64,000 bases of DNA from the IMG/VR virus record IMGVR_UViG_3300034072_000926, positions 372,001 through 436,000 of that record. The stretch is one strand, 5' to 3'. Both the position numbers and the translations under genes were made by a program. The notes under the pieces were generated by a model that saw nothing but the letters and a program-made list of their open reading frames with translations, searched no databases and had not been told where the DNA came from. This document shows positions 9,057 to 29,645 of the stretch, in pieces (position 1 is the first letter of the stretch; the number at the start of each line of letters is the position of its first letter).

Positions 9057-10964
9057 CTAATATTTCCGGCCCCGCATACGAGAGTATTCCATCTTCCGCT
9101 GCTCTTGTTCAGCTTGTTCGCGATCCGCCATATATTTGCGGAGAACCGCCTTCGAGTCGGCCTTGACCTTCTCGGCCTTCATAGCTTCTGCACGTGCCTT
9201 TTCATCCGCTATGGCTTTTTTCCGAATCTTGTTGTTTAGATTAAGCAAAAACAGCTGGGCTTCGGTTTGAGTTTCGAACCGGTGCATTTCATCTTCGGTT
9301 CGGACTATGAATTGTCCGAGATTATTTTCTTTGTTGTAGCCGGACTTTGGACCCGCAATCTTCAACTGATTACAGATATCCTGGATAAGATCCTCGAATG
9401 ACTCGTAATCACAGAGGCCATAGACTTTGACCTTCCATTCATTGTTAATGAGCATGATCAACTCAATCTCATCCTGTCCACCAATGACTTGGTAAATGTC
9501 TTCATTGAGACTAAAATCGCTATAAACGATTTCCTGACAGAAGTGATTGACTTGGTCAAAGACATCCTGCCATGTTTCTCCTCTCAGACAAAGGATATTT
9601 GATTGAGCAGTCGGCTCATAGGCATCCTCGAGGTATCGTTCCTTCATCTTATTCATTTTGCGCTCATAGCGATCCTCGGCGAGAAACATATCTCGCAAGG
9701 ATTCTATGTCGTCATTCTCTTGTTCCTTATTCTCAAGAGGAACAATCTCAGCCTTCTTTGTTGGTGGTGCAAGCAAACTCTGTGCCACAACATCATCGGC
9801 CTGTAACTGGCGTAGATGACGCATTGAAGCGGGCATATAGTTCTCAGGCTTCGTCCACCATTCGGGCGCTGGCAATGCCTCGGCCAACGGTCCGTTAGGA
9901 TTGAGGAAGAATGCTTTGCCTTCGCTCATCCAGTAATGGTCGTTCATTTCCCGCTGCTGTTCAACAGTCCAGAAATTGTTCGAGACAGCCGGAGGACCCT
10001 CGGCTTCCAACTGACGAGCAACGCGCTGTTCGCTTGTCTGAATGAGGACCAGGTTCTTCTCGATAGCTTCCTGATTTGCTGCATAGTCGTTCAACTGGGC
10101 TTCGAGGCGCTGTTGCCTGATGGCTTCCCGATTGGCAATGATCCACCAAATTTTGCTCGCCGTGATCATGAGGCCGTCTCGACCCAAGTTGATATCCTGA
10201 TGGTGCTGGAAGACGGCGGGGAGACTTGCTTTCACTTCGTTTGCTGTCGGATAGAAGTTCCTCAGTTCATAGAACAGTTTCAAACCCTTTTCAGTCAACC
10301 ACCAACGTGGCGAACCCTTCTCCCAAGTGTGGCCATTCGATATAAGCCCTTGCTTGGTCAGGTTATCAATTATGGACTTGTGATATCCGCTTATGCCAAT
10401 TGAGTGAATCCTGTTCGGATTCAAGCATAGGTTGGGTTGCTTTGACTCTTGGATTCCTCGAACTGCACCCTCAATTTCATTGAGCTCGGCGACATTTATG
10501 GAATACTTCTCTGCCAGTTTGTCCTTGAAATCATAGACCTGACGATTAAACTCGGAAATGGTCAGACGTGCCGACTTACCAGTGCTTGCTGTGTAGCAGG
10601 TATGAAGATGGGCTTGGAGGTGCTGTCCCTTGTCAGTCAGGAAATAATATCCGAACTGTTCAAAGACGATATTCTTCCTCATGAGGGTTTTGATACCCTC
10701 ATGATGTTGATCTGGCCAAAGTGGATCAGGACGGTGCGCAAGCCTCATACCTGAGAATTGCTTGTGAGATGCGCCGGAACCGTCAGGATCGATAAGTGTG
10801 ATCTCTTCGGCCTGACGGATCATCATGCAGCTATACTGAGTGATACCTCGACCTTCAAGCGTCGCAACTGCCTTCGGGTATTTCATTCCTCGGATAAGAT
10901 CATGAAGTTCCATTGAGCTTTCCCGAAGGTCCCTTTCTAAGGCTTGTGCGGCTCCAAATATCAT
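9057..10964 (-). CDS. large hypothetical protein, possible winged-helix repeats
   Basis: 635 aa; two 'LT.KG' wing motifs (YFLTDKG, WWLTEKG); upstream TAAATA. Confidence 0.7.
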   Translation of the reverse strand: MIFGAAQALERDLRESSMELHDLIRGMKYPKAVATLEGRGITQYSCMMIRQAEEITLIDPDGSGASHKQFSGMRLAHRPDPLWPDQHHEGIKTLMRKNIVFEQFGYYFLTDKGQHLQAHLHTCYTASTGKSARLTISEFNRQVYDFKDKLAEKYSINVAELNEIEGAVRGIQESKQPNLCLNPNRIHSIGISGYHKSIIDNLTKQGLISNGHTWEKGSPRWWLTEKGLKLFYELRNFYPTANEVKASLPAVFQHHQDINLGRDGLMITASKIWWIIANREAIRQQRLEAQLNDYAANQEAIEKNLVLIQTSEQRVARQLEAEGPPAVSNNFWTVEQQREMNDHYWMSEGKAFFLNPNGPLAEALPAPEWWTKPENYMPASMRHLRQLQADDVVAQSLLAPPTKKAEIVPLENKEQENDDIESLRDMFLAEDRYERKMNKMKERYLEDAYEPTAQSNILCLRGETWQDVFDQVNHFCQEIVYSDFSLNEDIYQVIGGQDEIELIMLINNEWKVKVYGLCDYESFEDLIQDICNQLKIAGPKSGYNKENNLGQFIVRTEDEMHRFETQTEAQLFLLNLNNKIRKKAIADEKARAEAMKAEKVKADSKAVLRKYMADREQAEQEQRKMEYSRMRGRKY

Positions 10965-14329: not shown

Positions 14330-16039
14330 TTATGCGCTTGCAGTCTCCAGGAGGTAATTCAAATACTTTTGGCAAAAGTCCTCAACTGTATCATCGGGGT
14401 GCCATCCCAAGGAATAAGAAAAGTTTGCGAAGCCGATGTTGCAGTCTCTGATCTTAATACCAGTGTTCTTGAAGAACGTGATATTTGCCTGCCAGATAAT
14501 CCGACTTAGTTCCATCTCAATATTGGCCGGAACTTTTGCACGAGTTTGCAAGTTGACAAAGGGAAGGATGTAGGGAACCCGTCCCCTCGTTTTATCGGGA
14601 AGGATTACTGAAAGCCCGCCATGTTTCGAACCGACAATGAAGTCTCTCAGGTCGACCACATCGTAATATTCAGTGCCCGCATAGTCGGCGAAGTCGCTGA
14701 GGATAACCTGTCCCTTAATCTTCACACTAGGTGGGAGATTGTTGCGGACTGCATTGATCGTTTCGCCCGTCACGGTATCGTCCTCGACCAACAGATATTC
14801 ACCCTCAGGGATCTTATCAAACTGGTCTGCGAGTTCCTCTGCCCCAGGACGCGCTGCACGATAGAGGGGCTTGTATTGGGGGCCGTAGGGCGTGAAATAG
14901 CGGGTCGAATCAATCCGATAAGTGCCTGAGAAGAAGGGATCCAATGAGATTGTCTTCTGATCGCCGATGACCTTTTTGGCCTCGCTAATCTGTTTCGTAA
15001 CGTCCAGGAGGTGGACTTTGTTCTTCATGCCCGAGAGCTTGAATAGTTGGGCAAATCCAAGGCGAATCGCATTTTGGAGAGCGAGGCGACGACGATCAAG
15101 AACCTCTTTGCTCTCGAAATACCGCTCCCAATGACCGACAGTCATGTCCTCTTCGTTACGGATCAAGTAGGGGAGTTCGCCCGTATCGGTCTTTCCGATG
15201 CCCTCGAAGTATTCGCGCACCTTCGGATCTAGGTGATCCAAGTTGCCTTCTCGAACAGCTTTGCTCGAAATATTCGAGCGCTCGACCATGACGGTATGAC
15301 CTGGGAGAGCTGCACTGAAGCCAGCATTGTCGCTGCCATGCACGTAGAATATTTGAACGGGGCCACTGTATTGTTTCAAGAAGCGACGATAAATGTCCGT
15401 GAAGTTGATCTCCGCAGGCATGTAGCGAGCAGCCCAAGGATCGCAAGATAACCAATCACTGTCCTGGACTGCCAGTTCGACCATCGCACACCGATCCGCT
15501 GCACTGATTGCAGCCGTGCCGTTATACTTCTTGCTCACATAACTATCATGTCCGGGGCAGAAATAACCAGCTACGACGGAGAAACCTTTATCTTCCAATT
15601 GTTTGCGAGCGTTTTCCATCATTGCAATGTGGCCGTTATGGATAGGGGCCATCCCGCCAGTTGTGAACAAGACTGCAACATTGCGGGTATTGTGATCAAT
15701 CTCATTGTAATTGGAAACAAGCTTATGATCTGACACACATGAGAAATCAGTGTCAAAGAGGAGATAGTCCTCTACCAGTTTCTCGAGCCCGTCATCGAAG
15801 AAGCCAGCATCGTAGAGCGCTTCGGTTGTCCGGGTTTTATTGTAGAGTGCATTGTAATAGGGATCAGAGAGAGCCTTCCACGCATAGCGGACGTCTGCGG
15901 AGAAATCCTCAGATTTACGACGATGATTGCCGTGCATACCGCAGGTCACAAAATCTGAACCCCGAGGGACTTCTAGGATGTCGTAGAGGTCACCTTCGGG
16001 ACGGTGCATCTCAATGCCACATGCGTAGGTGTCGACCAT
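14330..16039 (-). CDS. NMN/NaMN adenylyltransferase-like (HxGH) domain fused to a type I PRTase-like domain, with J-domain-like N-terminus
   Basis: TGGMAPIHNGH, HDSYVSKK, HGSDNA, ISSKAVR; YLLVEDDTVTGET PRPP loop; DLYDILEV...AWKALSDP. Confidence 0.7.
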   Translation of the reverse strand: MVDTYACGIEMHRPEGDLYDILEVPRGSDFVTCGMHGNHRRKSEDFSADVRYAWKALSDPYYNALYNKTRTTEALYDAGFFDDGLEKLVEDYLLFDTDFSCVSDHKLVSNYNEIDHNTRNVAVLFTTGGMAPIHNGHIAMMENARKQLEDKGFSVVAGYFCPGHDSYVSKKYNGTAAISAADRCAMVELAVQDSDWLSCDPWAARYMPAEINFTDIYRRFLKQYSGPVQIFYVHGSDNAGFSAALPGHTVMVERSNISSKAVREGNLDHLDPKVREYFEGIGKTDTGELPYLIRNEEDMTVGHWERYFESKEVLDRRRLALQNAIRLGFAQLFKLSGMKNKVHLLDVTKQISEAKKVIGDQKTISLDPFFSGTYRIDSTRYFTPYGPQYKPLYRAARPGAEELADQFDKIPEGEYLLVEDDTVTGETINAVRNNLPPSVKIKGQVILSDFADYAGTEYYDVVDLRDFIVGSKHGGLSVILPDKTRGRVPYILPFVNLQTRAKVPANIEMELSRIIWQANITFFKNTGIKIRDCNIGFANFSYSLGWHPDDTVEDFCQKYLNYLLETASA

Positions 16040-25080: not shown

Positions 25081-26286
25081 TTAAAAGGAAAATGCACAAC
25101 CCAACTGCTCGAGGACTTCTTCGGCTTCATCGAAGTCCATGTCGAACTCGTCGACCAGAAGGAACAACGTGGGTTGCTTGCCCTGCAATTGTGCGCGGAT
25201 CTTGTCCAGCTTGGTCGTCGGAGCAGCTACCTTAGGGGCCGGGGCAACCAAGCTCTTACGGGCTTCTACGATGCGCTGGACAGCTTCATCGCTAACAAAG
25301 GCACCGTGGACGCGCCGCAGGTTGCTGCCCTCCATGAGCAGCATGTCACCCTTGCCTAGGAGGTTCTCTGCACCTTCTTCGCCGATAATCGTCCGGCTGT
25401 CGAAATTGCTTGCAACTCGGAAGCTAATCCGAGTGGGGAGGTTCGCCTTGAGAACACCCGTCACAACGTCCACAGACGGCCGCTGAGTAGCCATAATAAG
25501 ATGGATGCCCGCTGCTCGCGCTTTCTGTGCAATGCGCTGCACAAGCCCTTCAAGGGCTTTGCCGGCCATCGAGATCAGATCAGCAAATTCATCAATGACC
25601 ACAACAATGTAGGGCAGCTTGTTGGCGTGCTTTTCATTGTAGTTCGCAATGTTGCGAACCTTTGCATCGCTGAGCAGTCGGTAACGATCCTCCATGGTCT
25701 GGACAATCTCACCCAGTGCCTCAATGGCTTCCTTGGGATCGGTAATCGTCGGGCGCAGCAAATGCGGGATGCCATCATATATGGACAGTTCCAGCATCTT
25801 CGGATCGATAAAGAGGAACTTGCATTCCTCTGCCGAAAACTTGGAAAGCAGGCTGAGGATCATGCTGTTCACGCCCACGCTCTTGCCCGATCCGGTGGTG
25901 CCCGCGACGAGCAAGTGGGGCATGGTAGCGAGGTCGCTCACGACGGCCTCCCCAGTGATTGCACGACCGAGGATGATGGGCAATGCCGCGTTGCTCTTCT
26001 GGAACTCCGGGGCAACCAAGAGGTCATCGAAGGAGATCATCTGGCGGTTCTCATTGGGAACCTCGACCGACATTGTGTTGCTTCCCTGCGTGGGAAGGAT
26101 ACGAATGCCCTGCACGCCAATGCAGCGCGCAATATCGTTGGTCAGACCGATGACCTTATTGGAACGGACACCGCGCTCCAATTCGATTTCGTAGGTGGAA
26201 ACCAGCGGGCCGCTCTTGACCGAAACGACTTCGACTTTGAAGCCGAAATCTTCGAAAGCTTGTTCCAGTGCAACGGTGCGGTTCAT
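25081..26286 (-). CDS. ftsK: FtsK/SpoIIIE DNA translocase motor domain only
   Basis: PHLLVAGTTGSGKS, IDPKMLEL, VVVIDEFADL, RAAGIHLIMATQRPSVDV, GAENLLGKGDML; no N-terminal TM. Confidence 0.9.
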   Translation of the reverse strand: MNRTVALEQAFEDFGFKVEVVSVKSGPLVSTYEIELERGVRSNKVIGLTNDIARCIGVQGIRILPTQGSNTMSVEVPNENRQMISFDDLLVAPEFQKSNAALPIILGRAITGEAVVSDLATMPHLLVAGTTGSGKSVGVNSMILSLLSKFSAEECKFLFIDPKMLELSIYDGIPHLLRPTITDPKEAIEALGEIVQTMEDRYRLLSDAKVRNIANYNEKHANKLPYIVVVIDEFADLISMAGKALEGLVQRIAQKARAAGIHLIMATQRPSVDVVTGVLKANLPTRISFRVASNFDSRTIIGEEGAENLLGKGDMLLMEGSNLRRVHGAFVSDEAVQRIVEARKSLVAPAPKVAAPTTKLDKIRAQLQGKQPTLFLLVDEFDMDFDEAEEVLEQLGCAFSF

Positions 26287-26549: not shown

Positions 26550-26906
26550 TCAGTCCTCGGATGCATCTCCAAAATACTGATCCTCGATGCTCTGGTTAGC
26601 ATCTTTGCAGTAGAGACGCCGGGCTTTAGCCATCTGTTCCCACGCGGGCCAGGTCAGACTAAGCTCAAGGAAATCGCCTAGTCCGTCTTTATCCGTTGTG
26701 CTTCGAGTCATAATGTGATGCTCGTCACACTCGATGACCTTCATGTCGTGATTAGGACCAGAGAAGCCGGCCTCACGCCATAGCTGACCAACAGCTGGCT
26801 CAACCTCAGGTGCCCGATGCCATTGCCACAAGCGGATCGGTACGCGCCAGAACTTCCATGCCATCCCGGCTCCGGCTACAATTGCACCTGTGGAAATCAG
26901 AGGCAT
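26550..26906 (-). CDS. hypothetical protein
   Basis: coupled ORF. Confidence 0.65.
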   Translation of the reverse strand: MPLISTGAIVAGAGMAWKFWRVPIRLWQWHRAPEVEPAVGQLWREAGFSGPNHDMKVIECDEHHIMTRSTTDKDGLGDFLELSLTWPAWEQMAKARRLYCKDANQSIEDQYFGDASED

Positions 26907-27070
26907 TAGTCGATGATGTCACAGCCGTGGATCAGACCGACAATAATCAGTGCGACCAACGTCGGCATTGCGACCCAGAGCCATGCAAAGTCCGGAATGA
27001 CTGCGAACTTGAGGATCATGAGGACGAACGAAATGAACAGTCCAGCAACAAAGATAAAGAGTTCACCCAT
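26906..27070 (-). CDS. small two-TM membrane protein (54 aa)
   Basis: MILKFAVIPDFAWLWVAMP; TAATG coupling at both ends. Confidence 0.7.
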   Translation of the reverse strand: MGELFIFVAGLFISFVLMILKFAVIPDFAWLWVAMPTLVALIIVGLIHGCDIID

Positions 27071-27855
27071 TAGTTAACCTTTTCGAATACGATATCTGTG
27101 CGGATGATGATCTTCTCGCTGTTCCAAGGCTTTTCAACAGCCTTGACATACGGAGCGCCATCATGGAGTAGTCGATGATCGAACAGCAAGGCTGATCCGG
27201 CCATCGGCTTGTTAGAGAACAGGACTTCATCATCGTTGCCGACGCGGTCCCAATCACTGAAATCCATGTCGGACATTGCGAATCCGGCCTGTGGATCTTT
27301 GAGGAAACGAGTAGCACCACTTTCGTTGCTCGTCAAGTAAATCACAAGACTCATCAGCGTTCGCTGGGTTTCCGTCTTCGCATAGGTGCCATCGTAATGG
27401 GCGACCAAGAGGCTTTCGTCCTCATAGCGAATGAAGCGCATCAACGGGTTAACGCCGATGGGACGCCATAGTTCGTGACCATCATGGTCAGTCGGCGTGA
27501 ACGGATTGCAGACTCGAACCTCCGGCAACAGTGGCTTTATCCGGCGCCACAGAACATCTGCGAGTCCCTCGTTGTAGTTGGACAGCCGATAGTTGCCGAT
27601 TTTGTCGTAGAGCTTGTTTGCGTAGCCGTCCGTGCCAACGGCCTGCCAAGCATTCTGTCGCAGACCTTGGAGCAGGACGCTGATGATGCCGGCTGGAATG
27701 AGATTGTCGATGGTGATTGCCTCGTGACCATCGCCGATGTCATGTGTCTCGTGCCTCCAGATCGGAGCGCAGAGATAGTTGCCGCCGAAATGACTACCCG
27801 AAATGATCTTGTTCGAATAGTCTGAATATTCGAAGGAGTTGACGAAGCCGCTCAT
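27070..27855 (-). CDS. 2OG-Fe(II) oxygenase (prolyl-hydroxylase-like)
   Basis: RFIRY..AHYDG, LVIYL, GATRF, LLFDHRLLHDG, KIIIRTD. Confidence 0.85.
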   Translation of the reverse strand: MSGFVNSFEYSDYSNKIISGSHFGGNYLCAPIWRHETHDIGDGHEAITIDNLIPAGIISVLLQGLRQNAWQAVGTDGYANKLYDKIGNYRLSNYNEGLADVLWRRIKPLLPEVRVCNPFTPTDHDGHELWRPIGVNPLMRFIRYEDESLLVAHYDGTYAKTETQRTLMSLVIYLTSNESGATRFLKDPQAGFAMSDMDFSDWDRVGNDDEVLFSNKPMAGSALLFDHRLLHDGAPYVKAVEKPWNSEKIIIRTDIVFEKVN

Positions 27856-28028
27856 CGGTCGCTCAGTTTCCCGATCGGACTCGTCATACCACAGAGGCGG
27901 AGCCATCCTGCATGATTGCGTCGACGTTCTGCATCCTGGGCTTCCAGCTGCTCGCGCTTTTTCTCTGCCCAGTAGCGATCGTTCTCCGTGAGGTCCAGCC
28001 CACGCCGGCCGTCATTGTGGTAGGTCAT
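27852..28028 (-). CDS. small hypothetical protein
   Basis: ATGA overlaps at both ends. Confidence 0.55.
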   Translation of the reverse strand: MTYHNDGRRGLDLTENDRYWAEKKREQLEAQDAERRRNHAGWLRLCGMTSPIGKLSDR

Positions 28029-29032
28029 TCTGCGGGCCTCCATGCTGGATTGTCCCAACCATCTTTAACACCACTTTGGAGAATGTCAAGATGGACTGCG
28101 GGCGACCGGCCCAGATATTTGTGGGCATTGTAGCGGTGCATCCGCTCCAGATTGTCGCGATATTCGTCATATTGCGCACGATCCTCAGCGGTGCCATAAT
28201 CGGAGACCATGCCGTCCACAAATGCAGCGCACAGGTCGCTCCACTTGGTATGCGTGAAGATCTCCACGAAATCGTAGGGCGCACCGAAGACGACCTCATC
28301 CGTGGTCGCGTCGAACATGTCGCCTGTTGGTGCGCGAGTGAGAACCTCTTCCGGAACCCCGAGGAAACGACCGACCTCGTAGACTTCCGATTTGAACAGG
28401 TCGCTGATCAGCTGGAGATCGACCATGCCGTCAGAAGCTTTGCCGAAATAGCCGAGGTAGCCACCCTCGCTGAGATTGGTCGTGCCGATGACCAGACCGG
28501 GCATTCCCTGTGCTGCGAGAACGCTGGTCACATAATAGTAGACTGGAGTCCGAGCGTAGCTGGTGATCTGACCACGACACCAGTCCGCTTTGTCCTCATT
28601 GGGTGCACCGAGACCGCTGAACAGTTCCACGTCCTGTATGATCTGCTTTGTGATCAGACTCATGTTGATTTCGTAGAACTTAACACCGAACGTCCGGCAG
28701 ACCTGCTCCGCGAGATTAGCTGCGTCGTCCTGTCCCGTTACGCCGTGATTCTCACGATCTGGCAGGGTGATGGCAACAATACGTTCGATCGGACTGTCCT
28801 CTGCCCGGCTGGCCATTTCGACCAGACCCAGGACCACCGCACTGTCGATGCCACCGGAGATCGCAACCACTGCGCTCTTGAGGCCGGCTTGTCGGTAATA
28901 GGCGTTGAGCAGCTTGATCTTTTCCTCGACCACCGTCTCAACATTGAACCCACGTTCCTGTCGGACATGAGCGAGAGCCTGTCGGAGCGGCGCACTGAGG
29001 ACCATGTTGGTCGAGTGGTTGCGGATTTCCAT
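28025..29032 (-). CDS. nadE: NH3-dependent NAD+ synthetase
   Basis: AISGGIDSAV, GTTNLSE, GYFGKASDG, LISDLFKSEV; no glutaminase domain. Confidence 0.88.
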   Translation of the reverse strand: MEIRNHSTNMVLSAPLRQALAHVRQERGFNVETVVEEKIKLLNAYYRQAGLKSAVVAISGGIDSAVVLGLVEMASRAEDSPIERIVAITLPDRENHGVTGQDDAANLAEQVCRTFGVKFYEINMSLITKQIIQDVELFSGLGAPNEDKADWCRGQITSYARTPVYYYVTSVLAAQGMPGLVIGTTNLSEGGYLGYFGKASDGMVDLQLISDLFKSEVYEVGRFLGVPEEVLTRAPTGDMFDATTDEVVFGAPYDFVEIFTHTKWSDLCAAFVDGMVSDYGTAEDRAQYDEYRDNLERMHRYNAHKYLGRSPAVHLDILQSGVKDGWDNPAWRPAE

Positions 29033-29044
29033 GCTGGTTGCCCC

Positions 29045-29218
29045 TTACTTGCTCTCGTAGCGACGGATTGCAGCTTCGGCGCGGGCTTTGCTAACATAGC
29101 CCCAACCGTTGTTGGCCGGGCTGTTGAAGCCGGAAAAACCACACCGGATATACCAGCGACCGTGCTTTTCCTCGACCGCATCTGCTTCATTAGCGCGGGT
29201 AATGTGGTTGTAAAACAT
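29045..29218 (-). CDS. hypothetical protein
   Basis: after cassette unit 29219-29278; GFNSPANN motif. Confidence 0.75.
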   Translation of the reverse strand: MFYNHITRANEADAVEEKHGRWYIRCGFSGFNSPANNGWGYVSKARAEAAIRRYESK

Positions 29219-29282
29219 GCTCGATCTCCTGTTTGCTTCTGTTGTTTTCACACTAGCAGCAAACAGGAGGGAGTCAACCTGT

Positions 29283-29645
29283 TTATTCGGAACACCAGCT
29301 TATTAACATCAAAGTCTTAATTTGCTTCAAATGCTCTTTCGTTACCTTAATTTCTGGCGCATAATGATTCCAGCCGTCACCGCCAACGCCGCCGACACCT
29401 CCGCCAATCCGCACCATCGATCGATCTCCTAGCATCTTTAGCAAATCGATGTCATTAACCACCCCTAAAGTATTGCTTTCGAAATTATTTCCTTTGCTCT
29501 CATATTTTACGGGAATCACGCTGCTAACCAATAAACGTCGGTTATTGCTATATCTGATCGATATACCGTAATGGTCACGCAGCAGCTTGTTAATAACCCG
29601 GAGACCGGCATTATCAATAATTCGGGCTTCAATGCGCTTATCCAT
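29283..29645 (-). CDS. hypothetical protein (AT-rich)
   Basis: after cassette unit 29646-29711. Confidence 0.7.
   Translation of the reverse strand: MDKRIEARIIDNAGLRVINKLLRDHYGISIRYSNNRRLLVSSVIPVKYESKGNNFESNTLGVVNDIDLLKMLGDRSMVRIGGGVGGVGGDGWNHYAPEIKVTKEHLKQIKTLMLISWCSE

Follow-up and report, generated by a model that had tools for sequence, protein, structure and literature searches.

A predicted NAD biosynthesis module, with an adenylyltransferase fused to a PRPP-binding domain, in a giant phage and in bacteria

In the Preiss-Handler pathway, nicotinate is converted to NAD by phosphoribosyl transfer (PncB), adenylyl transfer (NadD) and ATP-dependent amidation (NadE), and pncB-nadD-nadE clusters have been reported in "NAD-jumbo phages" (PMC11662467). 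A deamidated, NadE-using route in jumbo phages is therefore not new at annotation level. Phages also carry NAD reconstitution pathways. NARP2 (bioRxiv 10.1101/2024.02.11.579819) uses a type II Nampt, PRPP and nicotinamide to make a mononucleotide that is adenylylated by an Nmnat of the NadM/Nudix type, and needs no NadE; the NARP paper mentions neither NadE nor nicotinic acid. NARP1 consists of Adps, which is built from the PRPP-synthetase (type I PRT-like) fold, and Namat. NARP3 pairs a PnuC transporter with a NadR-like kinase/adenylyltransferase (PMC13464706). All known nicotinate, nicotinamide and quinolinate PRTases have the type II fold, and no type I enzyme that uses nicotinate or nicotinamide has been described.

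The locus described here lies in a window of 64,000 nucleotides from the IMG/VR virus record IMGVR_UViG_3300034072_000926 (Table 1). An earlier note, made from the sequence alone, reported an HxGH nucleotidyltransferase with NMNAT-like motifs fused to a domain with a type I PRPP-binding loop, together with a separate nadE. This observation is confirmed, and the supporting results are far beyond chance. The note further proposed a possible new phage route from NaMN to NaAD to NAD+, possibly started by the fused domain, with the substrate of that domain left open; this interpretation is supported only in part. The linkage to nadE and to NAD metabolism holds, but the note missed a fourth partner enzyme, the bacterial origin of the module and a second, canonical NAD pathway in the same phage.

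Table 1. Positions of the module genes, domains and motifs (window numbering unless stated otherwise)
Position	Strand	Feature	Size or residues	Details
14330..16039	-	Fusion gene	569 aa, ATG start	Three-part protein
15686..16039	-	N-terminal region	aa 1-118	Mostly helical; conserved AGFFDDGL-type motif, G79 invariant; function unknown
15176..15685	-	NMN/NaMN adenylyltransferase-like domain	aa ~119-288	
15629-15640	-	HNGH motif	aa 134-137	
15251-15271	-	ISSKAVR motif	aa 257-263	
14333..15175	-	Type I phosphoribosyltransferase-like domain	aa 289-569	Conserved hairpin with R380, Q388 and R397; conserved DVVDLRDF and RxPYxxP motifs
14759-14794	-	PRPP loop		LLVEDDTVTGET
28025..29032	-	Module NAD synthetase (short NadE)	335 aa	No glutaminase domain
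27070..27906	-	Module 2OG-Fe(II) oxygenase	278 aa	Immediately downstream of nadE
26550..26906	-	ORF downstream of the oxygenase gene	118 aa	Unknown function; membership of the module uncertain
145755-151142 (phage genome, G000)		Canonical NAD cluster		Gln-NadE, PncB, Nudix and NadM-like NMNAT

The fusion protein has 113 homologues, some annotated simply as nicotinic acid mononucleotide adenylyltransferase, which align from residue 1 at up to 60% identity and 100% coverage and so support the start codon. An AlphaFold2 model of the whole protein has a pLDDT of 94.4 and a pTM of 0.93, and the N-terminal region, which has no PDB sequence match, is confidently modelled. In the adenylyltransferase domain, both the (H/T)xGH motif and the second ATP motif, ISSTxxR, are present, and H134, G136, H137, S259 and R263 are invariant in 59 homologues. 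Pfam CTP_transf_like (PF01467) scores E 4e-9, above its cut-off, but TIGR00482 scores 39 bits against a cut-off of 112 and all other NCBIfam NadD/NMNAT models are also below cut-off, so that this is a divergent subfamily. The best PDB sequence matches are eukaryote-type NMNATs, 9rpk at 6e-10 followed by 5z9r and 1nup. Foldseek with the whole model returned only this domain, matching NMNAT/NadD structures at E 3e-8 with probability 1.0 and a TM by target of 0.57-0.72. Eukaryote-type enzymes such as human NMNAT1/3 and Arabidopsis NaMNAT act on both NMN and NaMN. Identity to the matches is only about 20-24%, and adenylylation by the phage protein was not assayed, so its substrate preference is unknown.

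The C-terminal domain has a canonical type I PRPP loop, with a hydrophobic strand and two acidic residues before xxTGxT, in which D420, D421 and G425 are invariant and T427 is nearly so. A profile of this domain hits the PRPP loop of adenine, hypoxanthine and orotate PRTases and of PRPP synthetase in the PDB, with a best E of 4e-4 on the APRT loop. When folded separately, the domain was modelled with a pLDDT of 96.9. Exhaustive structural alignment with VIA-align places type I PRTases in almost all of the top 35 places, but with middling Z values of 5-7.4 over 80-140 residues, Foldseek against the PDB gives only E 0.04, and no Pfam model, PF00156 included, matches the domain; taken together, these results leave the presence of the five-stranded alpha/beta PRT core unsettled. 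The protein also lacks the PF04095 or PF01729 match that would mark a type II pyridine PRTase. Catalytic competence is suggested by the invariant acidic pair and TGxT, by an Arg/Gln-bearing hairpin where type I PRTases have their catalytic flexible loop, and by further invariant Arg residues. About 110 C-terminal residues, with their own invariant motifs, have no counterpart in APRT, HGPRT, OPRT or PRPP synthetase. The domain family has 1,228 cluster representatives, including stand-alone forms, and AFDB clusters show the same module fused to NadE- and NadD-annotated proteins.

The module NadE matches PF02540 at E 6e-30 (104.7 bits, cut-off 21) and the domain-level model TIGR00552 at 104 bits (cut-off 64). 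It is a divergent short form that reaches no other NCBIfam NAD-synthase cut-off (PRK13980, 121 against 255), and its closest solved structures are NH3-dependent NadE, including the Francisella enzyme 3fiu. The oxygenase scores 26 bits on PF13640, just under the cut-off of 27, but it matches a PADLOC 2OG profile at E 1e-7 and 2OG dioxygenases at TM 0.75 in an Atlas structural comparison. The HxD...H iron triad and the basic residue for 2OG are present, given that H170, D172, H244/H248 and R269 are kept in 37 orthologues. A PDB sequence search with the oxygenase gave nothing meaningful, and modelling of a NadE-oxygenase complex gave no answer, which is not evidence either way.

Absence of co-occurrence with nadE had been put forward in advance as grounds for rejecting the proposed route, and the opposite was found. 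PF02540 is present in 17 of 20 related IMG/VR records and in 8 of 8 that are at least 90% complete. Across 70 phage and bacterial loci, NadE lies within about 13 kb of the fusion in 62, and immediately upstream of it (directly or across one gene) in most of them. Of these 62 loci, 37 also have the oxygenase and no radical SAM gene, 23 have a radical SAM gene and no oxygenase, 2 have neither (one sits on a truncated contig), and none has both. The four activities also occur as fusions: NadE, 2OG oxygenase, NMNAT and PRT-like domain in single chains of about 1,130-1,210 aa (proteins P0141 and P0180), NadE with NMNAT and PRT-like domain (P0216), 2OG oxygenase with NMNAT and PRT-like domain (P0212), and NadE with 2OG oxygenase (606 aa, in locus L029). 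The idea that the oxygenase is a chance neighbour was rejected because of the fusions and the mutual exclusion.

The module is mainly bacterial, occurring in CPR bacteria, Clostridia, Myxococcota and Elusimicrobia, and was acquired by phages at least four times. Paraliomyxa miuraensis and a Streptomyces isolate are among its carriers. The window's fusion protein sits in a 100/100-supported clade with five jumbo-phage homologues. The ADPR-responsive repressor NrtR lies beside the module in Elusimicrobia, Collierbacteria, Saccharibacteria and Clostridia, PncA and PncB lie beside it in a Saccharibacteria genome, and NAMPT in a phage (locus L012). In five small genomes (one Microgenomates, one Curtissbacteria and three Clostridia MAGs), the module is the only recognisable NAD machinery, which makes the fused domain the only candidate for the phosphoribosyl step. 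Its NadE is the only full NadE hit in these genomes, and in the Clostridia MAGs the fusion is the only PF01467 hit at E <= 1e-5, although the two CPR genomes have one or two further short hits. PncB/NadV, PnuC and PncA were not found in the five, and NadC does not clearly pass its cut-off; in one genome (G029) it does so only when neighbouring hits in the frame are added. The completeness of these MAGs is unknown.

The best explanation, held at about even confidence, is that the gene encodes the bifunctional core of a four-activity module that makes NAD through deamidated intermediates. In this view, the type I PRT-like domain would join PRPP to a pyridine carboxylate, most likely nicotinate, to give NaMN, as a non-homologous stand-in for PncB; the fused NMNAT domain would adenylylate NaMN to NaAD; and the module NadE would convert the carboxylate to the amide. 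The oxygenase, replaced by a radical SAM enzyme in anaerobes, would carry out an obligatory oxidative step in close association with NadE. The leading guess is oxidative N-dealkylation of an amine or amino-acid adduct formed by NadE, which would unmask the primary amide, and the alternative is a maturase role on one of the enzymes. The precedent is ArcS/RaSEA in archaeosine synthesis, where lysine is used as nitrogen donor and the C-N bond is then cleaved by a radical mechanism. The radical SAM family (B) that replaces the oxygenase scores 165-196 bits on the RaSEA model TIGR01210, below the cut-off of 212, and in both cases the enzyme partners with a reaction that installs an amide or amidine nitrogen. 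The partner here is NadE rather than ArcS and the substrate a dinucleotide rather than tRNA, so the analogy is a hypothesis only. Two other ideas, trigonelline demethylation as the oxidative step and ring synthesis through the associated amino-acid racemase, found no support.

The analysis itself establishes the domain identities, motif conservation, gene linkage, domain fusions, oxygenase/radical SAM exclusivity and genomic distribution, whereas every substrate and product, the role of the oxygenase and any anti-defence function are inferred. No enzymology exists for any part of the module, and phosphoribosyl transfer to a base is supported only indirectly by the five small genomes. Many module-bearing genomes also carry a PncB, NadV or NadC gene, sometimes in the same cluster, and this phage has PncB and a second NMNAT, so the PRT-like domain is not generally a replacement for them and the fusion is not needed for a plain Preiss-Handler route here. 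A plain route also needs no oxidative step, so the fourth enzyme, regarded as obligatory, shows that part of the chemistry is not understood. In the phage, the module presumably raises or restores NAD during infection, alongside the canonical cluster.

A less likely alternative is that the C-terminal domain is not a base phosphoribosyltransferase but a PRPP-synthetase/Adps-like activating enzyme, pyrophosphorylating ribose 5-phosphate or ADP-ribose, or a PRPP/nucleotide-sensing regulatory domain. NaMN or NMN would then come from a type II enzyme (PncB, NAMPT) of the phage or host, and only the NMNAT and NadE steps would belong to the module. Type II PRTases do co-occur with the module in 11 of 20 related phage records, in 7 of 8 near-complete ones and in 13 of 28 bacterial genomes, and in four loci (L073, L012, L064 and L066) they lie in or close to its neighbourhood. 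In addition, the best reviewed-protein fold match is ribose-phosphate pyrophosphokinase (E 9e-3), this phage has no Prs-type gene, and NrtR responds to ADP-ribose, as its model name states. However, the domain is a single PRT-like fold without the N-terminal Prs domain (PF13793), purine and orotate PRTases score at least as well as Prs, the five small genomes have no type II PRTase, and the hairpin and many invariant residues outside the PRPP loop argue for catalysis on a specific second substrate.

It is more doubtful that the module makes a modified dinucleotide, such as an NAD analogue oxidised or otherwise altered on the base or ribose, or builds the pyridine base from an unusual precursor. 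The phage would use such a product beside its canonical pathway, for example as a cofactor or substrate that host NADases do not recognise. This reading is suggested by the oxidative enzyme, for which there are three unrelated solutions (a 2OG oxygenase and two radical SAM families), and by the redundancy with a complete canonical cluster in this genome. Clostridial versions also sit in larger clusters that resemble biosynthetic gene clusters, with a GNAT domain, a PLP decarboxylase-like gene, a second radical SAM gene and a 620-aa unknown protein. Against it are the neighbouring NrtR, PncA and PncB, the locus (L037) with neither an oxygenase nor a radical SAM gene, and the minimal CPR and Clostridia genomes, which have the module as their only NadE (and, in the Clostridia MAGs, as their only NMNAT-like gene) and must still make NAD. 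That the gene is an ordinary NadD/NMNAT with a degenerate appendage, near nadE through routine clustering of NAD genes, is very unlikely despite the plain annotation of some homologues and the Pfam recognition of the adenylyltransferase domain only, since the C-terminal domain is as conserved as the NMNAT domain (12 invariant positions across sequences that are 25-60% identical), is confidently modelled, forms a large family and keeps its PRPP loop.

The defining genes of NARP1 and NARP2 are absent from this genome or of a different type. There is no PF13793 protein, and the only PF04095 protein is a separate one of the PncB type (PRK05321, 437 bits against a cut-off of 379) rather than a NAMPT. 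With regard to NARP3, the fusion has no kinase domain and scores only E 0.017 on the NadR model; PnuC was not searched in this genome. A counter-defence role is an untested assumption. Nicotinamide, not nicotinate, is what NADase defences release, and no PncA is found in this phage. The boldest reading, which is unlikely but not excluded, is that the four activities form an undescribed route to NAD in CPR bacteria, Clostridia, Myxococcota and several jumbo-phage lineages. It would include the first non-type II enzyme for pyridine phosphoribosyl transfer and amide nitrogen delivery by NadE as an adduct, dealkylated by a 2OG oxygenase in aerobes or a RaSEA-like or other radical SAM enzyme in anaerobes. 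In phages, it would act as a fourth kind of NAD reconstitution pathway against NAD-depleting defences.

NAD biosynthesis is considered one of the most completely mapped areas of metabolism, and this module suggests otherwise. A PRPP-binding domain of the wrong fold class for pyridine salvage, together with the oxidative partner, points to at least one unknown enzyme activity and probably one unknown reaction step. The module may explain how some minimal CPR and gut Clostridia genomes that lack PncB, NadV, NadC and PnuC make NAD. Its repeated acquisition by jumbo phages, beside canonical NAD genes, makes it a concrete, testable candidate for a further NAD-rebuilding counter-defence, and the three phage genes are small enough for direct reconstitution. 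Full-text literature searches for this gene combination and for a type I nicotinate PRTase found nothing relevant, and a 2022 survey of viral NAD systems (PMC9503650) mentions neither NadE nor this fusion.

BLAST of the protein and of 20 kb of DNA against INPHARED phages gave no match, and PADLOC defence models gave nothing for the fusion or NadE and only the generic 2OG profile for the oxygenase. The 118-aa ORF, without a Pfam or PADLOC hit, is conserved only in the window's own phage clade, with tblastn matches of 32-79% identity in four loci (L006-L009). Among 20 neighbouring ORFs of the window searched with Pfam, only an FtsK-like ATPase and a weak winged-helix hit were identified.

The IMG/VR virus record from which bases 372001-436000 were examined is 465,259 bp long, is rated as complete by CheckV, and represents a jumbo phage with 49% G+C that has no relative in the INPHARED phage collection at BLAST sensitivity. 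The earlier note had described an NMNAT-like nucleotidyltransferase fused to a domain with a type I PRPP-binding loop, together with a separate nadE gene, and that observation is correct. Homologues of 55-60% identity align over the whole length of the fusion protein, and an AlphaFold2 model built on 59 homologues is confident throughout, with pLDDT 94 and pTM 0.93. Residues ~119-288 are an NMN/NaMN adenylyltransferase-like domain. The HNGH and ISSKAVR motifs are present and are invariant in the family, Pfam PF01467 scores above its cut-off, the best PDB sequence hits are eukaryote-type NMNATs at E 6e-10, and Foldseek finds NMNAT and NadD structures at E 3e-8. The domain scores below every NCBIfam equivalog cut-off, however, so it is a divergent subfamily. 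The region N-terminal to it carries conserved AWKxLxDPxY and AGFFDDGL motifs and is confidently modelled as mostly helical, but it has no Pfam or PDB sequence match; it is present in most NMNAT+PRT-like proteins but is missing from the shortest ones.

Residues 289-569 have no Pfam match, but they contain the loop LLVEDDTVTGET. A profile of this domain aligns that loop to the PRPP loop of adenine, hypoxanthine and orotate PRTases and of PRPP synthetase, with a best E of 4e-4. A separate model of the domain has pLDDT 97, for which Foldseek finds only weak PDB matches, with HGPRT at E 0.04. An exhaustive alignment against 48,000 chains puts type I PRTases in almost all of the top 35 places, at Z 5-7.4, over the core residues 58-164 of the domain, although no reviewed protein shares the whole fold. 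The domain therefore appears to be a remote type I PRT relative, and it also has about 110 extra C-terminal residues with their own invariant motifs. The only viral predicted structure that resembles it is BFVD entry A0A172Q0R7 (Foldseek E 2e-6, TM by target 0.63), an uncharacterised 212-aa protein of the cultured jumbo phage vB_AbaM_ME3 of Acinetobacter, which makes that protein a possible experimental handle. The nadE gene is also genuine. A longer open frame lies antisense to it and is picked over the real gene by a naive longest-ORF gene caller, but it is almost certainly not a gene.

Coordinates of the features discussed, in the window unless marked G000 (the genome of this phage)
Location	Strand	Size	Feature
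14330..16039	-	569 aa	NMNAT-like and PRT-like fusion protein
15686-16039	-	aa 1-118	Conserved N-terminal region of the fusion protein
28025..29032			nadE
27070..27906			2OG-Fe(II) oxygenase, directly downstream of nadE
26550-26906	-	118 aa	ORF directly downstream of the oxygenase gene, no family match
28076-29320	+	414 aa	Open frame antisense to nadE
25081-26286	-	401 aa	FtsK/SpoIIIE-family ATPase
9057-10964	-	635 aa	ORF with a weak winged-helix hit
G000:C1:145755-151142			Canonical NAD gene cluster (locus L031), outside the window
G000:C1:233913-234335		198 aa (open frame)	Third cytidylyltransferase-like gene, outside the window

The fusion gene and nadE belong to a conserved module that could not be seen from the sequence alone. 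To define it, 22 IMG/VR loci were collected, mostly from contigs of 170-480 kb, along with 51 loci from GTDB species genomes and several assembly contigs. A tblastn comparison over 70 of these loci shows that a short NadE lies within about 13 kb of the fusion in 62 loci, and immediately upstream in most. In 37 of the 62, a 2OG-Fe(II) oxygenase lies between NadE and the fusion, or next to NadE. In 23 of the 62 there is no oxygenase, and a radical SAM gene from one of two families is present instead. Family A is ~291 aa and lies just upstream of NadE in Clostridia and Elusimicrobia, whereas family B is ~370-390 aa, scores 165-196 bits on the RaSEA model, and occurs in CPR bacteria and in two phages. 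Two loci have neither gene, one of them on a truncated contig, and no locus has both an oxygenase and a radical SAM gene. The oxygenase in the window retains an HxD...H triad and arginine that are conserved in 37 orthologues. In this phage clade the NadE-oxygenase pair lies 9-13 kb from the fusion, and in the window the ATPase gene (PF01580 E 3e-61, with the FtsK alpha domain) lies between them. The small ORF that follows the oxygenase gene is conserved, at 32-79% identity, only in the window's own phage clade (loci L006-L009), and the ORF with the weak winged-helix hit is conserved near the fusion gene in that clade (L005-L009).

An exhaustive profile search with the C-terminal domain finds 1,228 cluster representatives, the architectures of which tie all four activities together. 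These include NadE+2OG+NMNAT+PRT-like in single chains of ~1,130-1,210 aa, NadE+NMNAT+PRT-like, 2OG+NMNAT+PRT-like, NMNAT+PRT-like+GNAT, and stand-alone PRT-like proteins. An oxygen-dependent enzyme that is replaced by radical SAM enzymes in anaerobic lineages is the classic signature of one isofunctional oxidative step, and that step must therefore be integral to the module.

The module belongs to NAD metabolism and is primarily bacterial. Neighboring genes include the ADPR-responsive repressor NrtR in several phyla, PncA plus PncB in a Saccharibacteria genome, and NAMPT in phage locus L012 and near the Elusimicrobia operon. In CPR and related loci (L029, L038, L040, L041, L070, L073 and L075), an amino-acid racemase that scores above the TIGR00035 cut-off, and is closest to cysteate/aspartate racemases, lies immediately upstream of NadE and may supply a D-amino acid to the pathway. 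In Clostridia (loci L027, L045-L053, L055, L059, L060 and L067) the module sits in a conserved 8-10-gene cluster that resembles a biosynthetic gene cluster, with a PLP decarboxylase-like gene (~370 aa), radical SAM A, NadE, NMNAT+PRT-like with a fused or separate GNAT, a second radical SAM/SPASM-like gene (~333-381 aa), an unknown ~620-aa protein and small ORFs. Carriers include isolate genomes, namely Paraliomyxa miuraensis and a Streptomyces, and multi-megabase scaffolds. In a maximum-likelihood tree of 57 fusion proteins, the phage sequences fall into at least four separate groups, and the window's protein sits in a fully supported clade of six jumbo-phage sequences.

The evidence that the PRT-like domain makes the mononucleotide is mixed. 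It has a canonical PRPP loop, it has a conserved hairpin carrying R380, Q388 and R397 at the position where type I PRTases have their catalytic loop, and it is fused to the enzyme of the next pathway step. In addition, five small genomes (one Microgenomates, one Curtissbacteria and three Clostridia MAGs) appear to have no other NAD machinery. In these the module NadE is the only full NadE hit, no PncB/NadV, PnuC or PncA is found, and NadC does not clearly pass its cut-off. In the three Clostridia MAGs the fusion is the only PF01467 hit at E <= 1e-5, although the two CPR genomes have one or two further short hits. Against a simple replacement, about half of the carriers also have a type II PRTase, sometimes in the same cluster, and the apparent absences are in MAGs of unknown completeness. 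The constant presence of NadE argues for a carboxylate (deamidated) intermediate, and hence for nicotinate rather than nicotinamide as the base.

This phage has two NAD gene sets. Outside the window lie four canonical genes, encoding a glutamine-dependent NadE of 591 aa (PRK13981, 635 bits against a cut-off of 479), a PncB of 442 aa (PRK05321, 437 bits against 379) whose start overlaps the NadE stop, a Nudix protein of 223 aa and a NadM-like NMNAT of 201 aa, with three small unknown ORFs between PncB and the Nudix protein. This is the Preiss-Handler cluster type already reported for "NAD-jumbo phages" (PMC11662467). The third cytidylyltransferase-like gene of the genome (PF01467 E 1e-12) could be CoaD, a sugar nucleotidyltransferase or another NMNAT. 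The genome has no PncA and no Prs-type gene. The module is therefore either redundant capacity or does something the canonical set cannot.

Of the described phage systems, NARP1 (Adps+Namat) and NARP2 (Nampt+Nmnat) do not involve NadE or nicotinate, and NARP3 is PnuC+NadR; none of their defining genes matches this module. The closest known scheme is the Preiss-Handler pathway, from which the module differs in the fold of the putative PRTase, in the fusion, and in the obligatory oxidative enzyme. The NAD reading of the earlier note is broadly right, and co-occurrence with nadE, the absence of which the note had said would refute it, is upheld by the locus comparison. However, the system is larger, older and more widespread than was proposed; it is not phage-specific, and a role against NAD-depleting defenses, which the note had raised, is untested. 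In short, the feature is real, and it appears to be a new form of NAD biosynthesis with at least one unknown enzyme activity.

In the proposed mechanism, PRPP and nicotinate would be converted to NaMN by the PRT-like domain, then to NaAD by the NMNAT domain, and then to NAD by NadE, with the oxygenase acting in close concert with NadE. Three observations point that way: NadE and the oxygenase are adjacent or fused; one of the substitutes is RaSEA-like, and RaSEA removes the carbon skeleton of a lysine used as nitrogen donor; and the module NadE lacks a glutaminase domain. It is therefore suggested that NadE attaches an amine or amino acid, and that oxidative N-dealkylation then releases the primary amide. 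Whereas the adjacency, the fusions and the domain content were observed directly, this reaction is an inference without direct evidence, and two alternatives are still possible. The oxidative enzyme could have a maturase role, like the aerobic FGE versus anaerobic radical SAM pair in sulfatase maturation, or the module could produce a modified dinucleotide.
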